IMG/VR virus record: IMGVR_UViG_3300033146_002768
Location: 124,001 to 188,000 of that record
Direction: 5' to 3' (one strand)
Length of the DNA: 64,000 bases
Shown: in pieces, positions 33,766 through 57,722 of the stretch
Layout: every line of letters begins with the position of its first letter
Numbering within the stretch: position 1 is the first letter of the stretch
Program-made: the position numbers and the translations under genes
The notes under the pieces: generated by a model
Told to the model about the DNA's origin: nothing
Seen by the model: only the letters and a program-made list of their open reading frames with translations
Database searches by the model: none

Positions 33766-33775
33766 AATATCTTCC

Positions 33776-34495: not shown

Positions 34496-34498
34496 TAT

Positions 34499-35957: not shown

Positions 35958-36062
35958 TTATTTATAAATAAATGGATCTTTTTTTTTAGATTTTCTTTTT
36001 TTAATTATATATTTAATTTCTAAAATAAAGTCTATCCATAATTCTATTATTTTTTTAATCAT
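35958..36062 (-). CDS. 34-aa carbamoyltransferase-associated peptide (not in ORF track)
   Basis: MIKKIIELWIDFILEIKYIIKKRKSKKKDPFIYK; start overlaps the upstream gene end. Confidence 0.6.
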   Translation of the reverse strand: MIKKIIELWIDFILEIKYIIKKRKSKKKDPFIYK

Positions 36063-37512
36063 GATTAAATACCTTTATATTGTGGTCTATTCCAAATTGG
36101 ATTGCATCCGATGAATTATTTACTAATGGTTGTCCTTTAACATTTAAACTAGTATTTAATAACATTGGGCATCCAGTCTTTTTATAAAATTCATTTATTA
36201 AATTCCAATAACCAGGACTTTCTTTTTTATTAACTGTATGAACTCTTGATGTATTATCAACATGAACTATAGCAGGAAATTTATCAGGATACTTACATGT
36301 CATTACATATTGCATGTAAGGACTTTTAGAAATAATCATATTAAAATATTCAGCGGCATATTCCTCTAATATAGATGGTGAAAAAGGTCGAAACTTTTGA
36401 CGATGTTTAATGTCGTTAATTTTATCTTTTATATTATTCCCACGAGGATCAGCTAATAAAGATCTATTACCAAATGCTCTTGGTCCAAATTCTGCTCGAC
36501 CATTTGCAACTCCAACAATATTACCTTTTAACAATTCTTCTAATAAAGATTTAACTGGATAATCACCTTTAATATTATGACCAAGATAAGGTCCTTTCCA
36601 ATTTAATCTTCCATTAATTAATGAAGCGGCTCCTATAGAAGACCCCGAATCACCTGGATTAGGCATTATCCAAATGTCATTAAAATATTTAGGTATTAAT
36701 CTATTAGCTAAACAATTTAAAGCAACTCCGCCACAATAAACTAAATTTTTTGAATTAGATATATGTTTAGATTGTTTAATAATATTTTCAATTACTTCTT
36801 CTGTAACTTGTTGAATTGAAGCTGCTATATCTTTTAGATAAGCTCCTTGTAGATAATCATTTGGAATTCCTTTATGACAATTTATTTTAAGTTTAAAAAA
36901 TTTATCTTTAATAAAATCCTTTTTAATTTTATCAGCATAAGATGGATACCCCCAACCAGCCATTCCCATTAAAATATATTCATCTTCATTTGGTTTTAAA
37001 CCACATCGTTGAGAAAATGCTGAATATAATATTCCTAATGAATGAGGATAATTAACTTTTTTCAATAATTTTAAATCATCTTTATTTCCTTCCCATATAC
37101 TTAAAGTAGACCATTCACCAATAGAATCTATACAAACAATAACAGCATTATCAAATGGAGAAGTAAAATAACTTGCAGCAGCATGACATTTATGATGATC
37201 CAAATATTTAATTGGAGTTTTAGGAAAATCAAATTGTTTAAAATAATTATGAAATATATTTTTAGTTTGAAATACTTCATTATATTGACCAGCAAATAAC
37301 TGTCTTGTTTTCTTTAAATATGGTTTTTCATAAAAAGCTATAACATCAGGAGTACCAAATCTTAAAGATTCATTTAATATTTCTTGGTTTAAATATAGAT
37401 CATTTTTTATACCAGAATATCGTTCTGAATGAGCAGCAAATAATATTTCATTGTCGTCTATTAATGCAATTGATGCATCATGACTTAGTGCATTTATTCC
37501 TAATACTTTCAT
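36055..37512 (-). CDS. O-carbamoyltransferase (NodU/CmcH family)
   Basis: SHDAS, HHKCHAA, GGVALNC, EFGPRAFGNRS, LNTSLN. Confidence 0.92.
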   Translation of the reverse strand: MKVLGINALSHDASIALIDDNEILFAAHSERYSGIKNDLYLNQEILNESLRFGTPDVIAFYEKPYLKKTRQLFAGQYNEVFQTKNIFHNYFKQFDFPKTPIKYLDHHKCHAAASYFTSPFDNAVIVCIDSIGEWSTLSIWEGNKDDLKLLKKVNYPHSLGILYSAFSQRCGLKPNEDEYILMGMAGWGYPSYADKIKKDFIKDKFFKLKINCHKGIPNDYLQGAYLKDIAASIQQVTEEVIENIIKQSKHISNSKNLVYCGGVALNCLANRLIPKYFNDIWIMPNPGDSGSSIGAASLINGRLNWKGPYLGHNIKGDYPVKSLLEELLKGNIVGVANGRAEFGPRAFGNRSLLADPRGNNIKDKINDIKHRQKFRPFSPSILEEYAAEYFNMIISKSPYMQYVMTCKYPDKFPAIVHVDNTSRVHTVNKKESPGYWNLINEFYKKTGCPMLLNTSLNVKGQPLVNNSSDAIQFGIDHNIKVFNHD

Positions 37513-38432
37513 AATATATCCATTATTAATTCATGTTCATTATAAACTAATTTATCGAGTATATCTTCTTGAGATAAATTTATGATTTGTTCTTTGTTAT
37601 CATCAATGTTAAACAGTTTTAAATAGTAATGGAGTCCATCATTAAACGTTTTATTTTTTGGAGAGTAATATACAGGTTTATTTAAATAACAAAACTCAAA
37701 TATTAACTTACCTATATTCTCCACAAAAATTCCTGTACATACTTCGATCCATCTTTGATATATGTATGAATTACAACCATGAGGTAATAACTTATCATTA
37801 CTAATATTTAAATGAGTTAAGTCACACCAGCTTATAATTTTTTGTTCATTAAAATAACTTTTGAATGTCCCCATATGTGCTTGTTTATTTTCATTTATAT
37901 CTCTACTAGTAACTAAATCTTTATCAATACTAGTTAATGACTTTTCAATATGATTTAATCTATTAATACTAAATTTATGATAATGAATAATAAACTTATC
38001 TACATATTGTTCGAATCGTTTATTGCTTGGGTTACCTAGAAGTGTTATTTGATCACAAAATATATGATTCTTAATATCAAACATATCATCAATATAATTA
38101 TTATGATATGAAATATATAATTGAGAAGTATCTAATAATATTAAGTGGTTACAATATATTTTAAAATTTGTCTTCTTTAAAAATCTTAATGTATTTGTTG
38201 TTGTGATAATAGTATCCGATCTCACTTCATCAGTTACTAATCTATCAACAAATTTTTGTGGAGAATCTTGAAGATTCTTTTTAATTTGATTCATCAATGA
38301 TTTAAAATCTGTGTTATATAATTTTAATACAAATTCTACATTAATCTGTTTTCTTAAACATAAATATAAATCTATAATTGTAGTATCAGATCCAGATATA
38401 GATCCTTTAAAAAATTCAAATATAGTTATCAT
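37509..38432 (-). CDS. divergent GT-B glycosyltransferase-like protein
   Basis: ENIGKLIFE resembles the GT4 E-x7-E motif; paralog of 38429. Confidence 0.45.
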   Translation of the reverse strand: MITIFEFFKGSISGSDTTIIDLYLCLRKQINVEFVLKLYNTDFKSLMNQIKKNLQDSPQKFVDRLVTDEVRSDTIITTTNTLRFLKKTNFKIYCNHLILLDTSQLYISYHNNYIDDMFDIKNHIFCDQITLLGNPSNKRFEQYVDKFIIHYHKFSINRLNHIEKSLTSIDKDLVTSRDINENKQAHMGTFKSYFNEQKIISWCDLTHLNISNDKLLPHGCNSYIYQRWIEVCTGIFVENIGKLIFEFCYLNKPVYYSPKNKTFNDGLHYYLKLFNIDDNKEQIINLSQEDILDKLVYNEHELIMDIL

Positions 38433-39319
38433 AATAACTCCAATATAAAATCATCATTATTATATACCAGTTTTTGTTCTATATCATATGGAGATATATT
38501 TAAAGATTGATCTATTGAGTCATCAATATTAAATAAACTTAAGTAATGATGAAGTCCGTCATCAATGGATTTATTCTTACATGAATAATAAACAAATTTA
38601 TTAAAATATAGAAATTCAAAAATTAACTTCCCAATATTTTCTATAAAAACATTTGGTTGTATTTCATACCATCGTTGATATAAGAATGATGAACACCCGT
38701 GAGGATATGTAGTATAACTATTTTTTAAATGACTAAAATCATAATTATTTATACTCTTATTATATTTATTAAAATATTTTTTAAATTGAACAACATGACA
38801 ATAATCTTCTTCATCAAAATTTAATTTAGTTGTTAATGATTTACTAATAGGAGTAAACTTATCCATTATATATTCTAATCGGTCACTGCTAAATTTATGA
38901 TAATATTCAACAAAATCAATATCTTCAAATAAATCATTACTAGGATTTCCAAAGAAAATTATTTTGTTAGCATAAATATTCTCCATAGGAAATTCTTTAT
39001 AATTCATAACACCTGCTGAATCTAGAATGATTAATTTATCGCAATATAATTTAATATCAGTTTGAGTTAATGTATAGAAATTAGTTATAATAGTATTTGT
39101 ATTATCAATTCTACTTTTTACAAATTCATTTATTATTCCTAAATGAGATTCACAAAAATTTTTATGAAAGTCATCTAATAAATTTCTAAAGTCATTTGGT
39201 GTTGATAGTTTATATGCCAACTTCACATCAAACTTATCTCTAAGAAAGAAGTATAAATCTATCATAGAAGTATTAGTTCCATTAATACCTCCAGAGTATA
39301 AATCAAATATTGTAATCAT
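38429..39319 (-). CDS. divergent GT-B glycosyltransferase-like protein
   Basis: N-terminal SGGING loop, ENIGKLIFE. Confidence 0.45.
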   Translation of the reverse strand: MITIFDLYSGGINGTNTSMIDLYFFLRDKFDVKLAYKLSTPNDFRNLLDDFHKNFCESHLGIINEFVKSRIDNTNTIITNFYTLTQTDIKLYCDKLIILDSAGVMNYKEFPMENIYANKIIFFGNPSNDLFEDIDFVEYYHKFSSDRLEYIMDKFTPISKSLTTKLNFDEEDYCHVVQFKKYFNKYNKSINNYDFSHLKNSYTTYPHGCSSFLYQRWYEIQPNVFIENIGKLIFEFLYFNKFVYYSCKNKSIDDGLHHYLSLFNIDDSIDQSLNISPYDIEQKLVYNNDDFILELL

Positions 39320-39888
39320 AATAACACCTCAATATCTATTCTTTCTCCACCTTGAAATTCAGTAATTCCAAAATTAGTTTCTAATATACCTTTATAAAAT
39401 CTATCAGAAACATTATATGGAAAAGTAAATATACTTGGAGATATTTGTAAATGTTTTTCAAATTCTTTAAACATTTTCTCTGAATCATTATTTATATATT
39501 CGCATTTGTATCTTAAATTATTTATTAATCTAAGGTCTGTATGACTGTGACTATGTCCACTTATAATAGTATTGTCTAAAGAATTAATAAATTTTATCTG
39601 ACTCCAATTCATATAATTTTCATAGTTTCCTGATTTAGCTTTTAACATAGCATCTTGACAAGTTATAAAGTCCCAACTTTGTGGTTCGCCTGTTGAGTTA
39701 ACTACCCCTGTAGGTATATTAAAAATAAGTGTAGTATCTAAATCATATAAATCAGGAAGAAATAAATATTGAGTCATTAATGCATCATCAAAACTAAGAA
39801 TATAATCCTCTAAAGACAAACATAAATATTCTTCTTTAAATTCATGTATCATTAATACTGGTTTATCTATATTCTTTTTTGTATACAT
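39316..39888 (-). CDS. polysaccharide deacetylase (NodB/CE4-like)
   Basis: LSFDDA, GHSHSH, FTFPY. Confidence 0.8.
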   Translation of the reverse strand: MYTKKNIDKPVLMIHEFKEEYLCLSLEDYILSFDDALMTQYLFLPDLYDLDTTLIFNIPTGVVNSTGEPQSWDFITCQDAMLKAKSGNYENYMNWSQIKFINSLDNTIISGHSHSHTDLRLINNLRYKCEYINNDSEKMFKEFEKHLQISPSIFTFPYNVSDRFYKGILETNFGITEFQGGERIDIEVLL

Positions 39889-40435
39889 ACCATAACCCCG
39901 ATTTATTTCCTTGATCTAAAAAAATTTTATTATAATTAATAAATAAACTATTTAATGTTTTAATTATATCTTTTGGATTTTTTAATCCAATCGGTCCACA
40001 TATTATAGACTCTTTAGATTTTAATTTTGGTTTACTTAATATCAATAATTTAGATAATCTTTTAAAATCATAAAATGAATCAACCATAATTAAATCTATA
40101 CTCTTATCACTAAAATTATTTATTGAGTTTAATACATCATCTTTTATTGTTTTTACATATTTATTAATTTTATATTTTTTGATATTTTTTTTCAAAGTAT
40201 TTTTCATATTATATTCATCTATATCTATACAATAAACTTCTAATTTCTTATAAATAATATATGGAGATATACTACAAATTGATCTACCTTTATAATTGCC
40301 ACATTCTACTAATGTTGAATTATCTGGGATCAAATCTAATAGCGCCCAATATCCTAATACTGATGTATAATCAAACCACCCTTCTGGCAATCCTTCATAT
40401 AATATTTTTGGATATATATTGCGAGCTTGAATCAT
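39863..40435 (-). CDS. class I SAM-dependent methyltransferase
   Basis: LVECGNYKGRS, YCIDI, SIDLIMVD. Confidence 0.75.
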   Translation of the reverse strand: MIQARNIYPKILYEGLPEGWFDYTSVLGYWALLDLIPDNSTLVECGNYKGRSICSISPYIIYKKLEVYCIDIDEYNMKNTLKKNIKKYKINKYVKTIKDDVLNSINNFSDKSIDLIMVDSFYDFKRLSKLLILSKPKLKSKESIICGPIGLKNPKDIIKTLNSLFINYNKIFLDQGNKSGLWYVYKKEYR

Positions 40436-42198: not shown

Positions 42199-42792
42199 TT
42201 AATTAAATGCTGAATAGAATGTAGCTAACCTTGCTTCAATATCTTCAACAGTTGTTAGTAATATAACTTCATCTGAGAAAATTTTGTAAATATCATAAGT
42301 TGATTTTCTCTCATCTAATTTATCTCTAAGATCTAAATAAATATCTAAAGCATCAATTATTGCTTGATCCCCTGCATTTATTATTTCAAGATATTTAGCT
42401 TCTCTATTTTCATCAGTAATTACATAACCAAGATCAATCAATCTATTATTTATAATAGTAAATCCATAAAAATCAAACATTGAAAGACTACCAACTCTGT
42501 TTGATGTAAATTGTCTAGCTTGATTTCTTGCACCAAGAGCTGCTGCAACAATTGCATCTTCTGCTGCCTGAATTATTAGATCACCTTCGACTAATGGATT
42601 GATTAAATTTTTAGCAAAGAATACTGATTGATTAGCTTCTAAAGAAGTTTCAATTGCGTTATAGCATTCAATTGATGAAATTTCATATAGTCTAACTCCG
42701 CCAAATTCAAAGATAGTTTCTTCATCCCCTTGAAATACAGATACTATTTGGTAATTAACACCAACATCATTAATACCAGCTATAAGTTTCAT
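42199..42792 (-). CDS. acidic hypothetical protein, first gene after an internal motif B
   Basis: GGAGG RBS; composition like the structural genes. Confidence 0.6.
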   Translation of the reverse strand: MKLIAGINDVGVNYQIVSVFQGDEETIFEFGGVRLYEISSIECYNAIETSLEANQSVFFAKNLINPLVEGDLIIQAAEDAIVAAALGARNQARQFTSNRVGSLSMFDFYGFTIINNRLIDLGYVITDENREAKYLEIINAGDQAIIDALDIYLDLRDKLDERKSTYDIYKIFSDEVILLTTVEDIEARLATFYSAFN

Positions 42793-42919: not shown

Positions 42920-44032
42920 TTATTTTCTATCAAAAACTCCATTTATTTTTCCCCAAATAGGAGACAAACCTTCATGATATGATTCTTTTGGATTTGACAT
43001 TCTCCATTTATAAAGAGGACCGCTTACACAATGAGTCTCTGTTGAATTATTTAAATATTTTGTATTAACAACCATACTTCCATATTTAATCGCTTCTTCA
43101 ACAATTGTAGTTCTCCACATAGGTAATATGGCTGTTACTATATTACCTGTATCAGGATTATCTGTTTTATCAAATCTTAAAATTGATAAACACTGTTGAT
43201 GAAATCTAGCATTATCTAAATAATAACTTTTATCTAAATCTCTTGATTTACAAATAAATTTTATTAATTGAGATAACATTGGAAAATATGTTCCATGCAA
43301 CTGATCTGAAATTCCTCTATACCTAATTTCTTGAGGTTTATATTCTCTACATACTTTATCAAGTTTTAACATTGGCTCTGTAGTATCACAACTTAATAAT
43401 ACTCCATAAGAATATTCTTGATTAGGTTTTAAAGTTATAATATTTTCAGTTATATCTCTAATGTATTTAGGATCAGTTTCACTATCTACACTTAACGCCC
43501 AATTAACTTGATTACTATCTGGAAATTTATTTATATAAGTATGATCTAATAATTTAATACCATTAGTATAAATATGTATTTTATTATTTGTATTTTCACA
43601 AATCCAATGAACTAATTTATCAAGATCTTTAAACATAGTTGGTTCTCCACCAACCATTCTAATCACTGGATGATATCCATCATAATGATATTCTTTATAT
43701 GGTCTTGAACCATAACCTCTTAGATCATTAGGAACAAATTCTTTTATATTACTTATAAAATCTTCAAGGGTATTGTTACCAGGATGTTTAACAATCAAAT
43801 CTTTTTCATAACAATATTTACAATTTTTATTACAATCATTTGTCATATGAAAAAATGATGTGAAGTAACCTCCTGCTGTTTCTTCGGGATGAAATTGTTT
43901 TTCCCAAATACTAAAATCTTCTTCTAATAATACTTTATCATCTTCTGATACTAACCATACTCCATTCATATCATAAACAATTTTCTTTTCTATTATATCT
44001 CTAAATTTATTTAAACCATGTATATTAGTCAT
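42920..44032 (-). CDS. radical SAM protein
   Basis: CNKNCKYC, VGGEPT, YTNG. Confidence 0.9.
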   Translation of the reverse strand: MTNIHGLNKFRDIIEKKIVYDMNGVWLVSEDDKVLLEEDFSIWEKQFHPEETAGGYFTSFFHMTNDCNKNCKYCYEKDLIVKHPGNNTLEDFISNIKEFVPNDLRGYGSRPYKEYHYDGYHPVIRMVGGEPTMFKDLDKLVHWICENTNNKIHIYTNGIKLLDHTYINKFPDSNQVNWALSVDSETDPKYIRDITENIITLKPNQEYSYGVLLSCDTTEPMLKLDKVCREYKPQEIRYRGISDQLHGTYFPMLSQLIKFICKSRDLDKSYYLDNARFHQQCLSILRFDKTDNPDTGNIVTAILPMWRTTIVEEAIKYGSMVVNTKYLNNSTETHCVSGPLYKWRMSNPKESYHEGLSPIWGKINGVFDRK

Positions 44033-45062
44033 TACTAATTTCTCCTGTATGAAAATTCTGATTATAATAATATGTTATTGGACATATATCATAAATACTA
44101 TTTTTAATATTATCTATTAAATATCGTTGAATTAAAAACAACTTAGACTGGTATATATCGTCTATGCTGGTGTATAATTCTGGATCTATATTAAGGTCAT
44201 CATTAAATTTATATGGCGCAAAAAACGGACATTGGACTATTGTATTGTTATAAGTATAGATAGCCTTTAATGGAAATCTATGACAACCATTAACATGATA
44301 AGATACATCAACATTATCTAATTTTATAATATCTTGAAATTCAGAGTATGTTTTTTGTATTGTATTAAAATTATTACAAGGGTTTTCTAATTCTTCATAA
44401 TCCTTTAATAATTGCAAGACATAAGTTAAATTTAATGGTTTATACTTTTCCATTATATATAATAATTCATCTCTATTTTTTATTACAGTATTAGCTATAA
44501 CTTTAATTCCTATGTCTTGTAATCGTTTTATATTTTTATAATGCTCTTCAAAGAAACCTTTATCAAAATGATAGTAATCTATTGAAGTATAAAAAGTAAA
44601 TTCCTTACCAACAGCATCACATATATCTTTACATAAAATAAAAAACATTAAATTATTTCCAATGTTTTTTAAGTTAGAATTAATTCTAAAACTTAATTTC
44701 ATTTTATGTCTTGTATAAATATTTAAACAACGATCTAAAAATTTTAATAAATCATTTGCTGGCAATAAGGTTAACTCACCACAATTGAAATGAAGTTTTA
44801 AAGAATCATGACCGTCATTTTTAAATTCAATTAAATACTTTTCTAAAAAAATATAAAATTTTTCATAATCAAATTCTTCATCTTGATTTAAATATTCTTT
44901 GAAGCAACAATGTTCGCAATTCATATTACATTTACTAGTTAAATTCACCCCAAGGTTAGGAGTGAATTTAACTATATTATTTTCTTGTAATATAATTTTA
45001 TTACACCAACTTTGAAAATCATTGCTATTCTCTATATGTCTAAACAATTCTTTTATATGCAT
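44025..45062 (-). CDS. radical SAM protein
   Basis: CNMNCEHC, NCGE, TSID.YH. Confidence 0.85.
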   Translation of the reverse strand: MHIKELFRHIENSNDFQSWCNKIILQENNIVKFTPNLGVNLTSKCNMNCEHCCFKEYLNQDEEFDYEKFYIFLEKYLIEFKNDGHDSLKLHFNCGELTLLPANDLLKFLDRCLNIYTRHKMKLSFRINSNLKNIGNNLMFFILCKDICDAVGKEFTFYTSIDYYHFDKGFFEEHYKNIKRLQDIGIKVIANTVIKNRDELLYIMEKYKPLNLTYVLQLLKDYEELENPCNNFNTIQKTYSEFQDIIKLDNVDVSYHVNGCHRFPLKAIYTYNNTIVQCPFFAPYKFNDDLNIDPELYTSIDDIYQSKLFLIQRYLIDNIKNSIYDICPITYYYNQNFHTGEISND

Positions 45063-45069
45063 ATGTTTC

Positions 45070-45630
45070 CTATAGATATTCTATATCATATTTTAATCTA
45101 ATATCACTTTTAGCTGAATAGTTACAGTTACATGTGCAAGCATAATTACAATTACATGTACAAGCATAATTACATTGACATGTACATGCATAATTACATT
45201 GACATGTACATGCATAATTACAATTACATGTACAAGAATAATTACAATCACAAACACATATTGCTTCTATAACATTAACTCTATCTCTCATTGCATTATA
45301 TTGTTGAGCTTCAATTTCATCATCTGTACCAGTATCAGTATCAGCTAAATATGACGGCCATGTCCATGCAGTAGCAGCATTGATGCCATCACGAAGTCTT
45401 CTAACATGTAAACTACTAGCATTAGTTGCAGTAGTAACAGCACCTGGATCTGCTGGCCAGCTAGCACTTCTTCTTGTTAATTCTGCAGCAATAGCTGTTC
45501 TTAATTCATTATGATAAATAGCTTTAATTGAGTTAGTTGTTAATGGATCGTCGCTCCAAGTAGTAGGAGTTATACCTGGTATATACCCTCCATGTGCTGG
45601 GCAACTATTTGTGTGTCCTCCGCAAGCCAT
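45070..45630 (-). CDS. Cys-repeat protein 2, putative radical SAM substrate
   Basis: six C-x-C-x-C-N-Y-x repeats, then SDIRLKYDIEYL. Confidence 0.85.
   Translation of the reverse strand: MACGGHTNSCPAHGGYIPGITPTTWSDDPLTTNSIKAIYHNELRTAIAAELTRRSASWPADPGAVTTATNASSLHVRRLRDGINAATAWTWPSYLADTDTGTDDEIEAQQYNAMRDRVNVIEAICVCDCNYSCTCNCNYACTCQCNYACTCQCNYACTCNCNYACTCNCNYSAKSDIRLKYDIEYL
45115..45258 (-). repeat. 24-bp coding repeat x6 (CxCxCNYx)
   Basis: read directly. Confidence 0.9.
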
Positions 45631-45642
45631 AGTATTATCTCC

Positions 45643-46218
45643 TTATTTAGTGCCTGAATAGTTACAATCACATGTACATGAATAATTACAATTACATGTG
45701 CAATAGTTACAATTACAAGTACAATAGTTACAATTACAAGTACAAGCATAATTACAATCACAAGTACAATTATAATTACATTGACATGTACAAGCATAAT
45801 TACAATCACAAACACATTCAGTTTCCATTGTATTGACTTGCGATCTAATAGCATTATATTGATCTACTTGAATTAGATCTCCAACTTCTGTATCTGGATC
45901 GTCTAAATAAGATGGCCATGTCCATGCTTTAGCAGCATTTACTCCATTTCTTAATTGTCTTACATGATTACTTTCAATTATATTTGTAGTAGCTACTGTT
46001 CCTGGGTCAGTTGGCCAACTTTGACTACGTCTAATTAATTCATCATCAATAGCATTTCTAAGTTCGTTATGATGTGTTGTTATAAACTTAGTAGATGTGG
46101 TTAACGGTTGTGTAGTCCACACAGTAGGAGATTCTGGGTATATTCCCTGAACATTAGATAGACAAGTGTTACTATGGTCTTCGCATGAAGATGGTGTTGT
46201 ATGTCCTGTACATGCCAT
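45643..46218 (-). CDS. Cys-repeat protein 1, putative radical SAM substrate
   Basis: seven CxCxCNY(x) repeats; N-terminal ~130 aa paralogous to the 45070 protein (HNELR.AI..EL.RR, AWTWPSYL). Confidence 0.85.
   Translation of the reverse strand: MACTGHTTPSSCEDHSNTCLSNVQGIYPESPTVWTTQPLTTSTKFITTHHNELRNAIDDELIRRSQSWPTDPGTVATTNIIESNHVRQLRNGVNAAKAWTWPSYLDDPDTEVGDLIQVDQYNAIRSQVNTMETECVCDCNYACTCQCNYNCTCDCNYACTCNCNYCTCNCNYCTCNCNYSCTCDCNYSGTK
45655..45816 (-). repeat. 21/24-bp coding repeat x7
   Basis: read directly. Confidence 0.9.
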
Positions 46219-46221
46219 AAT

Positions 46222-47370
46222 TTATCCTCCGTTTTGTTGCAATAATTTTCTTATCGCAAAAACTATTTTTCCATTTATTTTATAAAAATTGCATAATCTT
46301 GGTTGTGTAGTATAATCTCTCCATTTCTCAAAATAGTCTTTCTTTTCACTTCGGTCAAATTTAACCGGATTACATCTTAAACAAAATGTCGCTAAGCAAT
46401 TTTTACATTCCTCAGGTTCCCAACCAAAATTATTATTATGTAACTTATTAGTTATATCTAAATTTGTTATAAAGGATTCATTTTTAATATCAATAATTAA
46501 ATGTTCACCTTTTTTATCATCGTACATACTTCCATGACATTTGAAAATATTACCATCCCAATTAACACAAACCATATCTCGACCTGCGCAACATAAAGCT
46601 TTATTAGGATTAAACCAACTAAAGAAGAATTTATTATTTGTTTTGAAAAATTCTATTTCTTCCTTAGCAATTTTAATTAAAGACTCATTCAGTTCTTTAT
46701 TGAATACTTCTATTTCTTTATTATTATATTTTTCTAAGTTATAATAATCTATTGTTGGAAAATAATTATCACTTCTAAAGAAATTATTTTCAGGCATTTC
46801 TTTATAAAGATTTAATACATCTTCTCTTGCTTCAGGAAGATATTTAAATGCTTCAGGTGATATAGTAGATTTTATAACTGATGGTATTTTTCTTTTCCAT
46901 AAGTCTTTAATAACATTTCTTATTTTAGTACCAGTTAATTTATTCTTTTTAGTTTTTCTAAAGATATCATGAACTGGCATACCATCATATGATACTTGAA
47001 CACAAAACTTTGGATGACCAAACAAAGATTTATTTTTAGATTCTTCAAATATATCCATATAACGATCTAATAAATATCCATTGCTATAAATAAAAAACTT
47101 TACTCTATCATCTGTTTTAAAAGCAGTGTATATTTTTCTAATTGCTTTTTCATTAAGAGTAGGTTCCCCACCCCAAAATCCAATATTAAGTAAATCATAA
47201 TTCTTTTTAAAGAAATCAGAATTTAAAAGTTGATTCATTTTTATAATAAACAATTCATGATCTTTAAATTCTTTATGTTCAAAAAATTCATGTTCAAAAC
47301 AATAGGTACAATTGAAATTACAATTTGCTGTAACCGTTAAGTCGATATTATATATTCTTATATTTTGCAT
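46222..47370 (-). CDS. radical SAM/SPASM peptide-maturase-like protein
   Basis: CNFNCTYC, FWGGEPTLN, VSYDG, CCAG...DGNIFKC...CKNC...CLRC...C. Confidence 0.9.
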   Translation of the reverse strand: MQNIRIYNIDLTVTANCNFNCTYCFEHEFFEHKEFKDHELFIIKMNQLLNSDFFKKNYDLLNIGFWGGEPTLNEKAIRKIYTAFKTDDRVKFFIYSNGYLLDRYMDIFEESKNKSLFGHPKFCVQVSYDGMPVHDIFRKTKKNKLTGTKIRNVIKDLWKRKIPSVIKSTISPEAFKYLPEAREDVLNLYKEMPENNFFRSDNYFPTIDYYNLEKYNNKEIEVFNKELNESLIKIAKEEIEFFKTNNKFFFSWFNPNKALCCAGRDMVCVNWDGNIFKCHGSMYDDKKGEHLIIDIKNESFITNLDITNKLHNNNFGWEPEECKNCLATFCLRCNPVKFDRSEKKDYFEKWRDYTTQPRLCNFYKINGKIVFAIRKLLQQNGG

Positions 47371-47380
47371 TATTCACCTT

Positions 47381-48376
47381 TTAGAATTGTCTAAATTCAT
47401 GCTTTGTTTCTTTTTCATCATATGTAATTCCTGTTGTAGGAGATAAATATGAATTACCTATAAAATTATCTTTTTCACATATTCTGCATATATCACATAC
47501 ATGTCCACAAATAGGAATTTTATATCTTTCAAAAATAGATTTTAAATATGGAAGATTTTTTTCTTTAATTGTTTTGCCTACATGTGATTGTTTTAAAGTA
47601 TCATCAAGTTCTTGATAAGCATATCCAATAGTAATCCTACTTAAATAATCACTATTAAATTTTTCTAATATATAAATAGTATCGTCAATTACTTTATCAT
47701 AATTACCAGAATGAACTGTATAACTAATTTTAAAAGGAATTTTATATTTAGATAATGTTTTAATAGATTCTTCAACTATATCTTTACTATTAGTTCCATC
47801 TGGAAATTTTCTTTTGAATTGTCCAGAACCATCATAACTTATTTCCAAATTAAAACTTATATTATAGTGTTTACCATATTCTATTAAACTTTTTAAAGCA
47901 TTTAATTTGATAGAATTAAATAAGGTAGCATTAGTTATTAAACTTAATCCAAATCCTTTTGCTTTACCTTGAGAAACTAATTCTATTGTTTTAGCTATTG
48001 TATATTGTATTAAATCAAATTTTAAAAAGGGTTCTCCGCCCATAATAACAATAGTTGATATACAGTCTTTTTCTCTTACGCAAATTTCATTTAAAAAATC
48101 ATCAATCATTTTAGGAGTACAATTAGCTTGATCTTCAAGACCATTCTTACTACTAGATTCATAGCAATATGTACATCTTAAATTACAATCAGTATTTAAA
48201 TAAATAACATTAGTTCTTTGACTATTATTCATTTTAATTTTATTTGTTGGCAGATTGATACAAGTGTCAAATTCACAAGAGTTACATTCACCATTACATT
48301 TTTGAGATTCATTCTTTGATAATATATCACTCATATCATTAAAGAATGAATCTATATGTTTATCTATTTGATACAT
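47381..48376 (-). CDS. radical SAM protein with extra N- and C-terminal Cys clusters
   Basis: CNLRCTYC, MGGEPF, ISYDG; CNGECNSCEFDTC; CGHVCDICRIC. Confidence 0.9.
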   Translation of the reverse strand: MYQIDKHIDSFFNDMSDILSKNESQKCNGECNSCEFDTCINLPTNKIKMNNSQRTNVIYLNTDCNLRCTYCYESSSKNGLEDQANCTPKMIDDFLNEICVREKDCISTIVIMGGEPFLKFDLIQYTIAKTIELVSQGKAKGFGLSLITNATLFNSIKLNALKSLIEYGKHYNISFNLEISYDGSGQFKRKFPDGTNSKDIVEESIKTLSKYKIPFKISYTVHSGNYDKVIDDTIYILEKFNSDYLSRITIGYAYQELDDTLKQSHVGKTIKEKNLPYLKSIFERYKIPICGHVCDICRICEKDNFIGNSYLSPTTGITYDEKETKHEFRQF

Positions 48377-48804
48377 TAGTTTCCAATACTTTGTCTAATT
48401 TTATCTACTAAAGATGTAATTTCATCATCAATGTTTTCTTGTACTATTGGCGGTGTAGTTCCATCTGGAATATTTGAATGTCCATGACAATTAAATGCCG
48501 GGTCTTCATTGTTTTCTATATTAGTAACTGGACGTTTAAATAATTCTGAGGCTTCTTGAACAGGGTGATTAGAAACTGGGTGTTTAAATAGTTCTGAGGA
48601 TTCTTGAATAGGTTGACTAAAAATTTCTGGTTCATTACATTTACAATTGTCATCTTCTAATAATTTCAATACTTTATCACTTAATTGCAAAGCTTCAAAA
48701 CTAACTTCATCATTAATTTCTTTCATTGCATGTGTGATTTTTAAAAGACCTTTAGCACAATTAAAAATAATTTCATTTTGTTCTGGTGTATTATTACAAC
48801 TCAT
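48376..48804 (-). CDS. accessory protein of the maturase operon
   Basis: between two rSAM genes; internal QE(S/A)SELFK(H/R)PV repeat. Confidence 0.6.
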   Translation of the reverse strand: MSCNNTPEQNEIIFNCAKGLLKITHAMKEINDEVSFEALQLSDKVLKLLEDDNCKCNEPEIFSQPIQESSELFKHPVSNHPVQEASELFKRPVTNIENNEDPAFNCHGHSNIPDGTTPPIVQENIDDEITSLVDKIRQSIGN

Positions 48805-48819
48805 TTTCGTTTCTCCTTC

Positions 48820-49935
48820 TTAACCTACATTTTTTATTGAATTAATTAATGTTTCTTTAAACATTTTATTTTCTTTTAGTTCTTTGGTAATTCTCATTGT
48901 ATTTTTATAAGTAATTTTTAATATCTTACATAAATTATCAATCGGTTCTGCATACTCTTCTGGTGATGATGAATTTTTTAATTGACTATTCATACACCCA
49001 CCATTACAGTATTTATATAATTCACATTCTAAACATTTTTTAAATGTCTTAGGATTTATTAGATTTGGATTTCTAAGTAATTGAATTTCTTTAGTAAATT
49101 CTTGATTAAATGAATTTCCTATTTTCTTTTCTTTACAGCTACCAAATCTTGCACATGGATATATATCTCCATTAGGCATAAACCCAGCTCCACCAGTTCC
49201 AGCAAAACAACCAAAAGGTCTTTTACCAAAACTCTTACCAAATAAAAGGTCTAAAGTATATAGTTGAAAGAATCCAACATTAGCATTAATGCCTTCGTTA
49301 TAATATTTGATTACTTGGTTAGCTAATAAATGACATTCAATTTCATAATTAGCAACATCATAATCTGTCCATATATCATCTCGAACTAATGTAAAATCAG
49401 GGTTGTTGACATTTAATTCTTCAACAAACCATTTAAAATTATCAACCATTGTAGGAACACAATCAGGTGATACCATTACTTTACACCCACCACCACGTCC
49501 AAAGAAATATGATTTTAATGGTTCAGTTAAATATAAATCTAAACTAGAACCACCATGTTTCAATTTACGATTTTTTTCATTCCACAATCCATCAAATGAT
49601 AAAGACAATGCAATCTGATTATCATCAATGTATTGTCTTTTATAATCATCTTGTAATACTAAACCATTTGTCATTGCTATAATAAATTTACAATGAGAAT
49701 CATTTTTTAAAATTGGAATTATATATTCAATAAGCTCCCAATTTAATAATGGTTCACCACCAAACAATGCAGCAGTATATTCATGTTGTCCATAAAAGTC
49801 CATTATCTTTGGGAGCATCTTAAAATGTTTATCAAATATTTCGTTTGTCATATTATTCGGTTGTTGATTAATATAACAATATTCACAAGCTAAATTACAA
49901 TCTTCAGTCGTTACTATCTGAAATTCAAATCCCAT
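48820..49935 (-). CDS. radical SAM/SPASM peptide-maturase-like protein
   Basis: CNLACEYC, FGGEPLLN, LSFDG, CFAG...GDIYPC...CLEC...CNGGC...C. Confidence 0.92.
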   Translation of the reverse strand: MGFEFQIVTTEDCNLACEYCYINQQPNNMTNEIFDKHFKMLPKIMDFYGQHEYTAALFGGEPLLNWELIEYIIPILKNDSHCKFIIAMTNGLVLQDDYKRQYIDDNQIALSLSFDGLWNEKNRKLKHGGSSLDLYLTEPLKSYFFGRGGGCKVMVSPDCVPTMVDNFKWFVEELNVNNPDFTLVRDDIWTDYDVANYEIECHLLANQVIKYYNEGINANVGFFQLYTLDLLFGKSFGKRPFGCFAGTGGAGFMPNGDIYPCARFGSCKEKKIGNSFNQEFTKEIQLLRNPNLINPKTFKKCLECELYKYCNGGCMNSQLKNSSSPEEYAEPIDNLCKILKITYKNTMRITKELKENKMFKETLINSIKNVG

Positions 49936-49945
49936 TATATTTCCT

Positions 49946-50470
49946 TTATTTCACGAATCCTAATACTAATTTTTCATCTGGATTATCATTAGTTTCTAAT
50001 GCAATAGCCACTTTAAATATATGTTCTAATACATTAGTTGCTGATCTTAAACAACCATTACCTGCAGAAATAAGAATATCTTTTTTATAAACTGGTCCGA
50101 TTGTTCTAACTGGAACTCTACCAACTAAACCAACAACTGCTCCATCTTCCATTTTTGTATTCATTTCGAAACCAGGTGCTTTAGAAATAATACCAACTAC
50201 AAATTCAGATGCATCTTTATCACAAATCTCTGCATCAAATTCACTATCAGATATTTCCATTACTGTCCCAATAGGAAGAGAAATATCTGGATTAACAGAA
50301 TATCTCTCAGCAAGGTCACCGTAATATGCTCCAGTTGTATCACCTTGAAATGTAGCACAAAAAATATTATTAAATCTATCAGTTAGACCGCTACCTATAT
50401 TGTATGCTCCATTGCCAACATCAGTAGTAGTTTCATCTTTACCAATTTTTTGTCTTATTTTATAATTCAT
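49946..50470 (-). CDS. fibre-associated intramolecular-chaperone-like (peptidase G2-like) domain protein
   Basis: YGDLAERY, GTVMEI, VVGIISKAPG, GLVGRVPVR. Confidence 0.65.
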   Translation of the reverse strand: MNYKIRQKIGKDETTTDVGNGAYNIGSGLTDRFNNIFCATFQGDTTGAYYGDLAERYSVNPDISLPIGTVMEISDSEFDAEICDKDASEFVVGIISKAPGFEMNTKMEDGAVVGLVGRVPVRTIGPVYKKDILISAGNGCLRSATNVLEHIFKVAIALETNDNPDEKLVLGFVK

Positions 50471-50481
50471 AATATATCTCC

Positions 50482-51306
50482 TTATACCTCAATCCAAACG
50501 TTACCAGCAGAATAAGGTGCTAAAGAAACAACGTCAAATTGATTAGCTAAAGTAACAGTTGTATTTCCTTCAATAGTATCACTACCTTGTCTTTGAACAG
50601 TTACAGTGTTGGCATCAGAAGAAAGTTTCATTATTCTAATAACTCTATCTGATGTAGATGCTAAAGGTAATTCAACTATAGTGTTTCCAGCAGCAGTACT
50701 TACAACTACAGTATCATCTTCTGATGTAGCGGTATATGTTCCACCGCCAGTAACCTCAGAATAAACTACAGATGTTCCTGCTCCACCACCACCAGCTGTT
50801 GATGTTCCAATGCTTGGATTTTCTGGATCATAATTAAATACTGCATCAACTTGTTCAACTCCACCTGGAGCACTTACTTCTATAGCACCAAGGAAAAGGT
50901 GTGTACCTGGATTATAAACAGATGCTCTTTGTGAAGGTTTAATAATCTTAACAGATGCTTCTGGTGGAGGAGATATCTTTGCATATTCATAATGAAGGAC
51001 TAGATAATAATATCCAACCTCATTCCAAACACCACCTGCTCCATCTACATAAAAATCGACATCTGTCATATCAACATTAATGTTTTCAATTTCAATTAAT
51101 ACATCATCCATTATTGCTTTGCCAGCATTTGCTCTTGAAGTAGTATTGTTAACTATTTCTACAGTTATAGGAGATGGCATTAATAATACATTTGCACCAT
51201 CTGATATAATTCTAGTAAGTTTATTTACTACATCTGAGTTGTAGCTTGAATAAGGATCAACACTTCTGACTTGTGTAGGAATTGGGTTCCCCATAATTTC
51301 CTCCAA
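50482..51306 (-). CDS. putative baseplate/tail fibre structural protein
   Basis: C-terminal VELP...TVTV...DTIEG...W module typical of fibre/baseplate proteins. Confidence 0.55.
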   Translation of the reverse strand: MEEIMGNPIPTQVRSVDPYSSYNSDVVNKLTRIISDGANVLLMPSPITVEIVNNTTSRANAGKAIMDDVLIEIENINVDMTDVDFYVDGAGGVWNEVGYYYLVLHYEYAKISPPPEASVKIIKPSQRASVYNPGTHLFLGAIEVSAPGGVEQVDAVFNYDPENPSIGTSTAGGGGAGTSVVYSEVTGGGTYTATSEDDTVVVSTAAGNTIVELPLASTSDRVIRIMKLSSDANTVTVQRQGSDTIEGNTTVTLANQFDVVSLAPYSAGNVWIEV

Positions 51307-55886: not shown

Positions 55887-57722
55887 ATGGCTACACAAAG
55901 AACAGCGGAAGCAATTCAGTTAGAGAATGAAGTTAAAACTCATGATCAAGCATACTGGGTTAAAAACAAACCTCTTGTTAATGATGATATTTATGATCAG
56001 ATTGTCAGGAGACTTTTAAAAATCGAACCGGATAATGTATACCTTAATAAACCAAAAGCTCCAAAGGTTGATTCCCAAGGTAAGGTAACTCATTCAATCC
56101 CTATGTTAAGTCTTGATAAAGAATATGACTTTGATGGTATTCTAAAATTCTGTAAAAGAGTATGTAGAAGTTTGGATGAAAAACTTAAAGTAATGTTTAA
56201 GTTTGATGGAGTATCTGGTCAACTTATGTTTGATATTCTTGCCTCAAGAGGTGACGGTGATATCGGAGAAGACATTACACATAAACTTCCTTTTATGAAT
56301 ATTCTTACAAAAGGAGATCCAAACTTTGTACGAGGAGAAATTCTTTTCACCAAATCAAAGTTTAAAGAGATCAAAGGTGTCGTTACCAGAAAGAATGGTG
56401 AAGATTATAAGAATGAAAGAAACGCCGTTGGTGGTGTATTGAGTCGGGATGATATGGAACCTGTTCAAGTCCTTACCTTTGTTGACTTTGAATATATTTG
56501 CAAAGAGTTTACTCATGCTGAAATTATTGAACTTGGTGCTTATGGATGGCAAGGTATTGTTGAAGAAGCAAAGGAATCAAATTTTCCAACTGATGGACTT
56601 GTTATAAAAGTTGCTGATGAAGAATATGCAAAAACTCTCGGTGAAACAAGACATCATTCAAAATCTGCTACTGCATTTAAATTTGCTAATCCTGGTGCCT
56701 GGTCTGTATTAAGAAGTGTTTTATTCAGTCCTGGTAAACATGATATAACTCCAGTTGGTAAGATTGATCCTGTTGAAATAACAGGTGTATCAGTTGCTAG
56801 TCCATCTCTCCATAACTGGAAAAATATTCTTGACCGTGATTTACAAATTGGAGATGAGATTTGGGTTGAAAGAGCAGGTGATGTTATACCTTATATTTCA
56901 GCATCTAAACCAGGTAAAGAAAGAACTCCAATTGAGATACCTCCATGTCCTGTATGTGGTGGAGATGTTGCATATGTAGACCCTCAGTTGGTTTGTGTTA
57001 ATGATGATTGCCCGGGTAAACTCTTAAATAAATTATCTGATGCAGTTATTAGAATTGGGATTGACCGTCTTGGTAAACCCACTATTCAAAAGATGATTGA
57101 TACACATAACATTGAAAACTTGGTTGATATATTCTCATTATCAATGGATGATCTTTTAAAGATGGAAAGATTTGGAAAAACATCTGCTGCTAATCTTTAT
57201 AATGAAATTGATAAGGTTAGACAAGGTGGAGCATATGAATGGCAGTTCCTTGCATGTTTAAATATTCAAGGAATCGGAAGAAGTTTAAGTAAAGATCTTT
57301 TGGTTGATAGATCAATTTCTGATCTTGCTAAAATGACTGACGATATGTTAACTAAACTTCCAAATATTGGGGATGAGCGAGCTCATGTTTTAATTGAAGG
57401 AATTAGAAATAACTGGGAGTATCTCAAAATATTAAATCAGATAATTCCTTTAAAAGTTGCTGAGGTTAAAGAAGATATTAATGAAGATGCTATAAAGATT
57501 TGTTTCACTGGTCGATTCCCTGAAAATAAAAAAGTTTATTATGATCTCTTAGAAGAGAAAGGTGGATATGATATTATGAATAAAGTTACAACTCTTACTG
57601 AAGTTTTAGTTGTTGCTGATCCATCTAAGGAATCAAATAAAACAAAATCAGCAAAGAAGAAAGGGATTAAAATTATTGGGATTGATGAATTGTTTGGAGG
57701 TGTAGATATTGGATCAGCTTAG
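55887..57722 (+). CDS. ligA: NAD-dependent DNA ligase
   Basis: PMLSLDK, KFDG, SRGDG..GEDIT, TDGLVIK, AFKF, zinc finger, HhH, BRCT. Confidence 0.95.
   Translation: MATQRTAEAIQLENEVKTHDQAYWVKNKPLVNDDIYDQIVRRLLKIEPDNVYLNKPKAPKVDSQGKVTHSIPMLSLDKEYDFDGILKFCKRVCRSLDEKLKVMFKFDGVSGQLMFDILASRGDGDIGEDITHKLPFMNILTKGDPNFVRGEILFTKSKFKEIKGVVTRKNGEDYKNERNAVGGVLSRDDMEPVQVLTFVDFEYICKEFTHAEIIELGAYGWQGIVEEAKESNFPTDGLVIKVADEEYAKTLGETRHHSKSATAFKFANPGAWSVLRSVLFSPGKHDITPVGKIDPVEITGVSVASPSLHNWKNILDRDLQIGDEIWVERAGDVIPYISASKPGKERTPIEIPPCPVCGGDVAYVDPQLVCVNDDCPGKLLNKLSDAVIRIGIDRLGKPTIQKMIDTHNIENLVDIFSLSMDDLLKMERFGKTSAANLYNEIDKVRQGGAYEWQFLACLNIQGIGRSLSKDLLVDRSISDLAKMTDDMLTKLPNIGDERAHVLIEGIRNNWEYLKILNQIIPLKVAEVKEDINEDAIKICFTGRFPENKKVYYDLLEEKGGYDIMNKVTTLTEVLVVADPSKESNKTKSAKKKGIKIIGIDELFGGVDIGSA

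Follow-up and report, generated by a model that had tools for sequence, protein, structure and literature searches.

Why should a phage operon pair two proteins ending in arrays of Cys-x-Cys-x-Cys-Asn-Tyr units with a battery of radical-SAM (rSAM) enzymes, and is the product a released peptide or a part of the virion? To address this question, we first re-examined the locus in the 64,000-nucleotide stretch of viral DNA analysed here (the window), and then compared it with about 60 related viral loci. The initial annotation had described five rSAM genes, two of them with SPASM-type cysteine patterns, around two tandem paralogs of 191 and 186 aa at 42920-49935, and this description proved to be correct. 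All ORFs lie on the minus strand and are tightly packed, with gaps of 3-15 nt or small overlaps from 49935 down to 42920. Protein A (45643-46218, 191 aa) has 7 C.C.CNY units and 24 Cys, protein B (45070-45630, 186 aa) has 6 units and 20 Cys, and the two are 58% identical over their full length. At the DNA level, the units appear as 24/21-bp tandem arrays at 45656-45811 and 45118-45252. No other Cys-dense ORF exists in the 64 kb. On the other hand, the window holds at least 12 rSAM-type genes rather than five. Chance is excluded by the 606 homologs identified at E<=1e-3, so that the family has at least 606 unannotated members, and by the strongly conserved identity at every position of the unit, C-T-C-[NDQ]-C-N-Y-[ASPG or absent].

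The locus turned out to be one instance of a module that recurs in dozens of viral contigs. Its first gene (49946-50470, minus strand) encodes a 174-aa tail-fibre-tip-like protein that hits PHROG phrog_19602 ("tail fiber protein") at 3e-7; its homologs, often the C-terminus of 400-1100-aa fibre proteins, lie just upstream of the rSAM genes in 31 of 57 related loci. It is followed by rS5 (48820-49935), a 371-aa rSAM/SPASM enzyme without an N-terminal RiPP recognition element (RRE). In addition to Pfam Radical_SAM and SPASM hits, rS5 passes the SPASM model TIGR04085 (45.6 bits, cut-off 27), and its best named family is PapB (1e-40, 140 bits against a cut-off of 340). The best solved structure is 5WGG, that of CteB, with residues 104-418 aligned to 10-316; rS5 aligns to CteB only from residue 104 onward, in line with the lack of an RRE. 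The CxxxCxxC motif and the seven SPASM cysteines are 100% conserved in 17 orthologs, and orthologs are found in 49 of 57 loci. Next comes u142 (48376-48804), a small acidic protein; an ORF of about 100-180 aa sits at this position in nearly all loci, but the sequences are related only within sub-groups, and searches against curated families (Pfam, NCBIfam and PHROG) returned no hit. The rSAM enzyme rS4 (47381-48376, 331 aa) has a C-terminal CX3CX2CX2C motif (Pfam Radical_SAM 2e-15, phrog_19488 3.6e-32); its rSAM cysteines 64/68/71 are 100% and cysteines 290/294/297/300 are 94% conserved, and it is present in 43 of 57 loci. The rSAM/SPASM enzyme rS3 (46222-47370, 382 aa) is the gene most tightly linked to the Cys-repeat protein, lying immediately upstream of it in most loci. 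It hits Pfam Radical_SAM at 9e-10 and PapB at 7e-23, below cut-off, and in 23 orthologs its rSAM triad is 96% and all seven SPASM-pattern cysteines are 100% conserved.

Two further enzymes appear to be accessory to this clade, since outside the window's own contig homologs of either were seen only in a close relative (locus L048). One is rS2 (44025-45062, 345 aa), a divergent rSAM-like protein with a CNMNCEHC motif and only weak hits (PHROG rSAM family phrog_1802 at 1e-7; the best NCBIfam hit, YydG, at 7.5e-5). The other is rS1 (42920-44032, 370 aa), with a Pfam Radical_SAM hit of 5.6e-10 and a best NCBIfam hit to a viperin-like family at 4.7e-13, far below cut-off. The module is closed by d197 (42199-42792, minus strand), a conserved 197-aa partner found directly downstream of the Cys-repeat protein, or of a split chaperone ORF discussed below, in 42 of 57 loci. 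It matches phrog_25260, a family of unknown function. Its AF2 model (pLDDT 91.5) has a beta-sheet N-domain and a helical C-domain, and neither a fold nor a sequence match was found in the PDB.

The initial annotation had interpreted this arrangement as a RiPP-like system in which the N-terminal part serves as a leader and the repeats as cores to be cross-linked, an interpretation that our analysis supports only in part. Supported is the functional pairing of the Cys-repeat proteins with the rSAM/SPASM genes, since synteny holds in both directions. Starting from the substrate, the order tail-fibre tip, rS5, small ORF, (rS4), rS3, Cys-repeat protein, (split S74) and d197 recurs in about 20 distinct lineages. 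Starting from rS3, it recurs in 57 loci, of which 45 have an ORF combining the N-terminal domain with the Cys repeat and 9 have another Cys-rich ORF. Moreover, among 50,697 isolate phage records, the repeat, the rS3 orthologs (2e-62) and the rS5 orthologs occur in the same 15 Campylobacter Firehammervirus records. The occurrence of the repeat without rSAM neighbours, which would have spoken against the pairing had it been common, was observed in three lineages, where no rSAM gene is found within 10 kb. Also supported are the viral setting next to tail-fibre genes and the nature of the nearest enzyme families, PapB, SCIFF/CteB and the CXXX-repeat family, which are thioether-forming peptide maturases.

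The leader-plus-core part of the interpretation, however, needs revision. The N-terminal parts of protein A (aa 1-134, 45817-46218) and protein B (aa 1-124, 45259-45630) both represent the N-terminal domain of the family, which is predicted to be a folded three-helix domain rather than a leader peptide. In the AF2 model of protein B, helices 37-53, 73-86 and 108-122 have pLDDT >95 (95-98 over the domain). The domain is built from three IKAxHxxELR-type motifs, and the same module occurs in about 1,450 other protein clusters, including large surface proteins with RHS repeats, although fold searches returned no match. The repeats themselves occupy aa 135-187 of protein A (7 units, 45658-45816) and aa 125-171 of protein B (6 units, 45118-45258), where AF2 gives no confident structure (pLDDT below 50 in protein B). 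Protein A ends in SGTK, whereas protein B carries a tail, SDIRLKYDIEYL (45073-45108), equal to the first 12 residues of a Peptidase_S74 intramolecular chaperone, including the Ser...Lys dyad positions. Such a tail (SDxxLKxxI) is present in 90 of 120 family members. In a few relatives that carry the whole domain, position 1 of the Pfam S74 profile is the Ser right after the last CNY, so that the repeats end exactly at the self-cleavage serine. Many members keep only the 12 residues, and in at least 8 lineages S74 positions 13-73 are encoded as a separate downstream ORF; no such ORF exists in the window. In phage proteins, the S74 domain folds the upstream triple beta-helix into a trimer and then cleaves itself off before the Ser, using a Ser-Lys dyad (PMC8326128).

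Taken together, these observations suggest that the two Cys-repeat proteins are substrates of the co-encoded rSAM/SPASM enzymes and that the product is a structural appendage of the virion rather than a diffusible peptide; chemical cross-linking of a virion fibre protein by such enzymes has not been described for a virus. The virion role is further supported by the detection of the homolog from Campylobacter phage IBB_35 (gene 3-9, 60.3 kDa) in the virion proteome (PMC3322345, supplement). However, this evidence rests on a single proteome, with 2.6% coverage, of a distant 534-aa homolog that shares only the pre-repeat helix and the repeats. In addition, the family is essentially confined to viruses, and in the loci without rSAM genes the repeat protein directly follows 1,500-2,000-aa collagen-like fibre proteins. 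We propose the following course of events. The module would be co-transcribed with tail-fibre genes, and each substrate would fold its N-terminal domain, which probably serves as the docking handle for enzymes that lack an RRE and later as the virion attachment part. In this view, rS3 and rS5, each with an rSAM cluster plus two SPASM auxiliary clusters, and rS4 would modify the three cysteines of each C-T-C-[NDQ]-C-N-Y unit. The most likely product is a C-S thioether (ranthionine or sactionine type) to the conserved Thr, Asn/Asp/Gln or Tyr positions, which would allow up to 21 and 18 links in the two proteins. The 7-8-residue units would form the stalk of a trimeric beta-helix-type fibre, resulting in a thin, covalently stapled fibre resistant to reduction and proteases.

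Co-transcription is inferred from gene packing, and the fold of the N-terminal domain is predicted. The docking and attachment roles, the cross-linking reaction and the fibre architecture are all inferred. Apart from the SPASM model TIGR04085, all NCBIfam hits are far below the curated cut-offs, so the reaction type is extrapolated from the nearest enzyme families only, whereas trimer and beta-helix are inferred only from the S74 link and the 7-8-residue period. It should also be kept in mind that protein A has no S74 tail, that the window lacks the S74 remainder and that neither the N-terminal domain nor d197 has recognisable structural homologs. We place the probability of the complete reading at roughly 0.48. 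Of its components, the substrate-enzyme relation is likely, the virion structural role is somewhat more probable than not, and thioether chemistry is only slightly favored.

Among the alternatives, all of which we consider unlikely, the one that survives best is that the enzymes do act on the repeat protein but do not make thioethers, performing instead Cys-to-formylglycine oxidation as in anaerobic sulfatase maturases, epimerisation, C-C cyclophane formation at Tyr, or methylation. Indeed, rS3 and rS5 align full-length to the anaerobic sulfatase maturase family (TIGR03942, 5e-11 and 1e-17) and also hit cyclophane-forming families, rS2 weakly hits the YydG epimerase, and Tyr and Asn of the unit are as conserved as Cys. 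However, these hits are weaker than those to PapB, SCIFF and CXXX, and three invariant Cys per 7-8 residues is the hallmark of thioether substrates such as CrpA, SCIFF and CXXX (PMC13692751). Somewhat less likely is the classical RiPP of the initial annotation, in which the cross-linked core would be cut off and released at lysis as a bioactive peptide, for example an antimicrobial or a signal. The enzymes are closest to RiPP maturases, a Cys-rich C-terminal "core" after a conserved N-terminal part mimics the precursor logic, and two or more tandem paralogous precursors, as in two of the related loci (L067 and L092) with up to four, are typical of RiPP clusters. Nonetheless, no gene of the conserved module hit a protease, exporter or immunity family, the enzymes have no RRE, the predicted folded N-terminal domain also occurs in large surface proteins, and the only processing motif is an S74 chaperone at the C-terminal end, while a homolog is found in virions and the constant neighbours are tail-fibre genes. 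The weakest alternative is that the cysteines are not enzymatically modified but bind metal ions or Fe-S clusters inside a trimeric fibre, like the His-x-His iron sites of T4 fibres, or oxidise to disulfides after lysis, with the rSAM genes acting on something else: although CxC motifs are typical metal ligands, an extra N-terminal Cys/His motif, MACxGHxNxCxxH, is conserved, three lineages carry the repeat with no rSAM gene within 10 kb and the window has 7 further rSAM genes with no Cys-rich partner, so that not every rSAM gene here needs this substrate, this possibility is countered by the near-obligate adjacency and perfect phyletic match of rS3/rS5 with the repeat, by the absence of hits to metallothionein or any other metal-binding family in the Pfam search and by the strong conservation of the non-Cys positions T, N and Y.

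The statement of the initial annotation that the locus matches no recognised system is too strong. True relatives are Campylobacter phage CP220 gp140 (CPT_0180) and IBB_35 gene 3-9, which carry (CNYCTCD)x6 preceded by the same helix, in genomes that also encode the rS3 and rS5 orthologs. The repeat was noted in CP220 in 2010 as a 21-bp in-gene repeat without being linked to the rSAM genes, of which the genus is known to have 11-12 and for which metabolic roles were proposed (PMC2853527). The protein is, however, 534 aa long, with a different 280-aa N-terminal region and a long extra Cys-containing C-terminus, and the genes are dispersed rather than in one operon. Phage tailspikes and tail fibres with a C-terminal S74 chaperone (endosialidase K1F, T5 pb1), and also MyRF, share the SDxRLK Ser-Lys motif directly after a repetitive stalk, and in those proteins the chaperone folds an upstream triple beta-helix trimer (PMC8326128, PMC4690869). 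Full domains are present in family members P0088, P0098, P0106 and P0113, but in most members the domain is cut to 12 residues and in some of those the rest is a separate gene; we found no description of a split S74 chaperone. Here, moreover, the stalk is Cys-based and linked to rSAM enzymes.

On the enzyme side, the ranthipeptide and SCIFF systems (PapA/PapB and CteA/CteB, PDB 5WGG) provide the best-scoring named families and solved structure for rS5, rS3 and rS4, sharing the rSAM core plus a seven-Cys SPASM domain and Cys-to-side-chain thioether formation on Cys-rich substrates. However, the scores are far below the equivalog cut-offs, the substrates there are short peptides of about 40-50 aa with leaders, and CteB uses an N-terminal RRE that is absent here. 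The CXXX-repeat peptide system (TIGR04115, TIGR04119, TIGR04117) likewise pairs a repetitive Cys substrate with a dedicated rSAM/SPASM maturase; rS5 hits TIGR04115 (2e-19) and TIGR04119 (4e-11), below cut-off, and some relatives of the N-terminal domain carry CxxxC-type repeats, but the repeat here is CxCxCNY(x), and the CXXX system is bacterial with uncharacterised chemistry. In QhpC/QhpD (quinohemoprotein amine dehydrogenase gamma subunit), an rSAM/SPASM enzyme installs Cys-Asp/Glu thioethers in a protein that stays part of a larger assembly (as summarised in PMC13692751), and TIGR03906 hits rS3, rS4 and rS5 at 1e-12 to 1e-17. QhpC, though, has only three links, is not repetitive, has a leader read by an RRE and is an enzyme subunit, not a fibre. 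The closest published analog is CrpA/CrpC of Methanococcus voltae (PMC13692751, 2026), in which a Cys-rich repeat protein of more than 100 aa, with a conserved N-terminal part and a C-terminal repeat region predicted to be beta-helical, is encoded next to an rSAM/SPASM enzyme that installs ranthionine thioethers, paralogous substrates also being present. CrpC belongs to TIGR04463, where the window enzymes score 37-42 bits against a cut-off of 525, and has an RRE, while CrpA has a 17-residue repeat with CxxQ/D motifs. That system is cellular (archaeal) with no link to a virion, whereas the phage system has three conserved enzymes, an S74 chaperone motif and tail-fibre neighbours.

The minus strand between 51306 and 42199 carries a tightly packed gene row consisting of two tail-fibre-like genes (50482-51306 and 49946-50470), the radical-SAM (rSAM) gene rS5 (48820-49935), a gene for a 142-aa acidic protein (48376-48804), rS4 (47381-48376), rS3 (46222-47370), Cys-repeat protein A (45643-46218, 191 aa), Cys-repeat protein B (45070-45630, 186 aa), rS2 (44025-45062), rS1 (42920-44032) and a gene for a 197-aa protein, here called d197 (42199-42792). 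Proteins A and B are 58% identical and carry 7 and 6 C.C.CNY units, respectively, encoded by 21/24-bp arrays. The initial annotation, which had described five rSAM genes around two Cys-repeat paralogs and SPASM-type Cys patterns in two of the enzymes, is accurate as an observation. A scan for promoters and terminators was no better than shuffled sequence, and no tRNA was found in the window. No other Cys-dense ORF exists in the window, but it holds at least 12 rSAM-type genes rather than five. Seven further ones, one of them with a SPASM hit, lie on the minus strand at 27.7-35.3 kb, in an island covering 27694-35299 and 36055-40435, interleaved with two Nol-like carbamoyltransferases, a DUF6071 protein and a methyltransferase. 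Relatives (loci L033 and L034-36) show the same rSAM-rich island, followed by sugar-nucleotide enzymes. A peptidase (26266-27279, minus strand; phrog_16701, 1e-22) and a 718-aa tail-fibre-like protein (20105-22261, minus strand; phrog_3904) lie further down the same strand, so that fibre genes flank the whole rSAM island. On the opposite-strand block, which starts near 52.3 kb, where the GC skew flips sign, there is an NAD-dependent DNA ligase with adenylation, OB, HhH and BRCT domains (55887-57722, plus strand).

Four of the five enzymes in the row pass the Pfam cut-off for the radical SAM superfamily (PF04055) and the CxxxCxxC triad is conserved in orthologs, whereas the fifth, rS2, has the motif but only weak profile hits. 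To find out whether rS5 and rS3 possess a SPASM domain (TIGR04085/PF13186), we looked for its seven-Cys pattern, CX9-15GX4C ... CX2CX5CX3C ... C, which binds two auxiliary 4Fe-4S clusters. rS5 scores 45.6 bits on TIGR04085 against a cut-off of 27, and in both rS5 and rS3 seven cysteines in the SPASM pattern are 100% conserved among orthologs. However, rS3 has CX2CX4CX2C (Cys 322/325/330/333) instead of the canonical CX2CX5CX3C, and its assignment rests on the motif only. rS4 has a conserved C-terminal CX3CX2CX2C instead.

As for more specific assignments, rS5, rS3 and rS4 score best against the ranthipeptide maturase PapB (NF047865), followed by SCIFF, nif11-like, CXXX-repeat, QhpD-type, sulfatase-maturase and cyclophane families, but all scores are far below the curated cut-offs. 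Against PapB, with a cut-off of 340 bits, they are 139.9 bits (rS5), 81.3 bits (rS3) and 63.9 bits (rS4). Against the SCIFF maturase (TIGR03974, cut-off 425 bits) and the CrpC family (TIGR04463, cut-off 525 bits), rS5 scores 91.6 and 41.7 bits and rS3 scores 39.5 and 37.2 bits, with the alignments starting at profile positions of about 85-104, so the N-terminal RRE region is absent. The same is seen with the best solved structure for rS5, 5WGG (CteB; 6e-19), which aligns from residue 104. Scores against the CXXX-repeat maturase system (TIGR04115 and TIGR04119, cut-offs 350 and 150 bits) are 70.2 and 42.7 bits, and the target repeat is CxCxCNY(x), not CXXX. The enzymes represent new rSAM/SPASM families of the peptide-maturase type, their reaction being inferred from sequence alone. 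The d197 protein is modeled confidently (pLDDT 91.5), but a Foldseek search with this model against the PDB gave no match at E<=1e-3.

Protein A has 606 homologs at E<=1e-3 in a collection of 5.8 billion proteins, and none of those listed has a functional name. Across the best 120 of them the unit is C-T-C-[N/D/Q]-C-N-Y followed by A/S/P/G or nothing, is 7 or 8 residues long and occurs 3 to 16 times per protein. The three Cys define the unit, but each of the other core positions also has a strongly dominant residue or residue class. A scan of the contigs of 185,579 species genomes found only three short contigs from metagenome-assembled genomes (MAGs), L038, L039 (Thermoplasmata MAG) and L040 (Erysipelotrichaceae MAG), which carry the complete phage module and are probably viral contigs binned into MAGs. 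Therefore, the family is essentially viral; the window itself comes from a 207-kb IMG/VR contig. A tblastn search of isolate phages with protein A found nothing, probably because of the low-complexity filter and the divergent N-domain, although blastn and PHROG did detect the repeat of Campylobacter phage CP220. A profile search of the PDB with the family alignment returned only spurious hits to Myc and G-beta.

To address the linkage between the repeat proteins and the enzymes, we collected loci starting from either side. Starting from the substrate, we obtained 31 viral loci in about 21 lineages, of which seventeen or eighteen show the same order: tail-fibre tip, rS5, small ORF, (rS4), rS3, Cys-repeat, d197. 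In one lineage the small ORF after the rS5 homolog (L013:1947-2231) looks like an acyl carrier protein (a DSM motif) rather than the usual acidic protein. Starting from rS3, for which a 19-sequence alignment was too divergent for the locus search but a closer 8-sequence set worked, we obtained 57 viral loci; 49 of these have rS5, 43 have rS4, 42 have d197, 45 have an N-domain+Cys ORF and 9 have another Cys-rich ORF. Several loci that first looked empty carry a variant tail, CxCNSDCx4CxCx3CGCNY, directly downstream of rS3. A sister family (L055, L058, L060, L062, L065, L087, L093 and L100, about 7.5 kb into each rS3-centred locus) has the same N-domain, synteny and S74 tail, but carries this single Cys-knot-like tail instead of tandem repeats. 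An NCBIfam search with variant Cys-rich relatives gave only sub-threshold hits, the best being TIGR04117 at 3.7e-4. In L067 and L092 (about 9.5-12 kb), three to four tandem Cys-rich paralogs follow the rSAM genes, against two in the window. rS1 and rS2 are accessory; outside the window's own contig they recur only in the close relative L048.

Among 50,697 isolate phage records, the repeat, rS3 orthologs (2e-62) and rS5 orthologs (1e-62) occur in exactly the same 15 records, all of them Campylobacter Firehammervirus (the CP220 group). In CP220-type phages the rS3 ortholog is gp136, the rS5 ortholog is gp023 and the repeat protein is gp140. The linkage is not without exceptions, as three lineages carry the repeat with no rSAM gene within 10 kb; there it directly follows collagen-like fibre proteins of 1,500-2,000 aa or sits among tail-fibre genes. 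A UDP-glucose/GDP-mannose dehydrogenase-like gene recurs beside the rSAM genes in distant members (L034-36:73-887, L100:8280-9518 and, in CP220, L098:2666-3436), whereas no homolog was detected among the ORFs of the window. We also considered the tail-fibre tip protein as the rSAM target and rejected it, because in Campylobacter phages an rS3 ortholog lies about 2 kb from the repeat gene, and no tip-gene homolog was detected in the roughly 9-10 kb either side of the repeat gene or near the rS5 ortholog.

The N-terminal part of the repeat proteins is predicted by AF2 to be a three-helix domain at residues 20-125 with pLDDT 95-98, whereas in the monomer model the repeats are below 50. The domain consists of three copies of a motif resembling [FW]TDxPLxxGxxIKAxHIxELRxAIN. 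A profile of it finds 1,457 cluster representatives, many without Cys repeats, including some proteins of 700-2,000 aa with RHS repeats, Ig-like domains and similar, but Foldseek searches of the PDB and BFVD with the domain model returned no match at E<=1e-3. It appears to be a modular domain, predicted to be folded, rather than a leader peptide. The extreme N-terminus (46180-46218 in protein A and 45592-45630 in protein B) has a conserved Cys/His motif, MACxGHxNxCxxHxGY, which some relatives (L003, L006, L010 and L033) repeat in tandem and which could be a metal site or a further modification site.

At the C-terminal end, 90 of the 120 homologs finish in SDxxLKxxI, and 86 of those stop within three residues after it. 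Four family members (P0088, P0098, P0106 and P0113) carry a complete Peptidase_S74 domain (PF13884), whose Pfam profile position 1 is the Ser directly after the last CNY. In at least 8 lineages a separate ORF of about 90-100 aa matches S74 positions 13-73, which is exactly the part missing after the 12-residue tail. In seven of these it lies just downstream of the repeat gene (L005:10624-10905, L020:10492-10788, L026:10566-10841, L029:10568-10879, L033:10704-10994, L038:2378-2677 and L040:10732-11016), and in L004 (5529-5798) it lies 5 kb away, just before d197. We searched the two pieces separately, considered programmed read-through or frameshifting that would join them and rejected it, since the two ORFs are in different relative frames in different lineages, each downstream ORF has its own start codon and in L004 the two lie 5 kb apart; this is a split gene and not recoding, and it appears to represent a trans-acting form of an 'intramolecular' chaperone. 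In the window, no complete domain is present: protein B keeps only the first 12 residues (SDIRLKYDIEYL), protein A keeps none, the remainder ORF is absent, and rS2 and rS1 occupy its slot. In phage proteins the S74 domain folds the upstream triple beta-helix into a trimer and then cleaves itself off before the Ser, using a Ser-Lys dyad spaced as in SDxRLK (PMC8326128; PMC4690869). The Campylobacter phage homolog has the same pre-repeat helix and (CNYCTCD)x6, and this distant homolog was listed in the IBB_35 virion proteome (gene 3-9, 60.3 kDa) at a coverage of only 2.6%.

The most economical reading of these data is a protein-level, RiPP-like maturation of a virion fibre. In this view, three cysteines per 7-8-residue unit would be processed by two SPASM enzymes and one further rSAM enzyme, thioethers to the conserved Thr, Asn/Asp/Gln or Tyr would be the most likely product, and the stalk would trimerise as S74-dependent fibres do. 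In a thioether cross-link of the sactipeptide/ranthipeptide type, Cys S is linked to the C-alpha or C-beta/gamma of an acceptor residue, with a change of -2 Da per link and loss of the free thiol. Our analysis establishes the gene content, the conservation, the co-occurrence, the S74 junction, the model of the N-domain and the reported virion detection of one homolog. Everything beyond that is inference, to which we assign rough probabilities of about 0.8 for the substrate-enzyme relation, about 0.6 for the structural role and about 0.55 for thioether chemistry; the trimeric beta-helix is likewise inferred, from the S74 link (PMC8326128) and the 7-8-residue period. The interpretation in the initial annotation, namely a RiPP-like system with cross-linked core repeats behind a large leader domain, is only partly supported. 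Of the alternatives, a different Cys, Tyr or Asn chemistry survives best, although we regard it as unlikely. A released RiPP, which would have a leader peptide recognised by the enzymes, commonly via an RRE, and removed by a protease to release a small product, also seems unlikely; in our searches no gene of the module hit a protease or transporter family, no RRE was present and the N-terminal part is predicted to be a folded domain. Metal binding or disulfides without enzymatic modification are about as unlikely; neither repeat protein had any Pfam or NCBIfam hit at E<=0.01, to metallothionein, another metal-binding Cys-rich family or otherwise.

It is tempting to go further and propose, tentatively and with the odds rather against it, that many uncultured phages and Campylobacter Firehammervirus build a virion fibre whose stalk is a trimeric Cys-ladder covalently stapled by dozens of enzyme-installed thioether bonds. 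RiPP-type radical chemistry would then be used to manufacture part of a virus particle, and it may have partly replaced the S74 folding chaperone, which is split or reduced to 12 residues in most members. If true, this would be, as far as our searches show, the first case of rSAM/SPASM cross-linking applied to a structural protein of a virus. It would offer a role for at least two of the 11-12 rSAM genes of CP220-type Campylobacter phages, which have been attributed to host metabolism since 2010. It would also define at least 600 proteins and at least two new rSAM/SPASM enzyme families for enzymology, and supply a natural design for short, hyper-cross-linked protein rods. The split Peptidase_S74 chaperone, for its part, is of independent interest for the folding of trimeric fibres.

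Our full-text searches, which covered open-access papers only, found no description of rSAM-modified phage structural proteins or of a split S74 chaperone. The Campylobacter phage papers of 2010 and 2012 noted both the 21-bp repeat and the many rSAM genes, but did not connect them. The closest published system is CrpA/CrpC of Methanococcus voltae, in which an rSAM/SPASM enzyme puts ranthionine links into a Cys-repeat protein (PMC13692751), a paper that does not mention phages. The present reading, if correct, would extend this very recent finding that SPASM enzymes modify whole proteins to a system with a readable biological output, namely virion stability and infectivity. The pairing of an rSAM/SPASM enzyme with a Cys-rich substrate is thus already known, whereas the inferred setting in a virion fibre, the enzyme families and the repeat itself are new.
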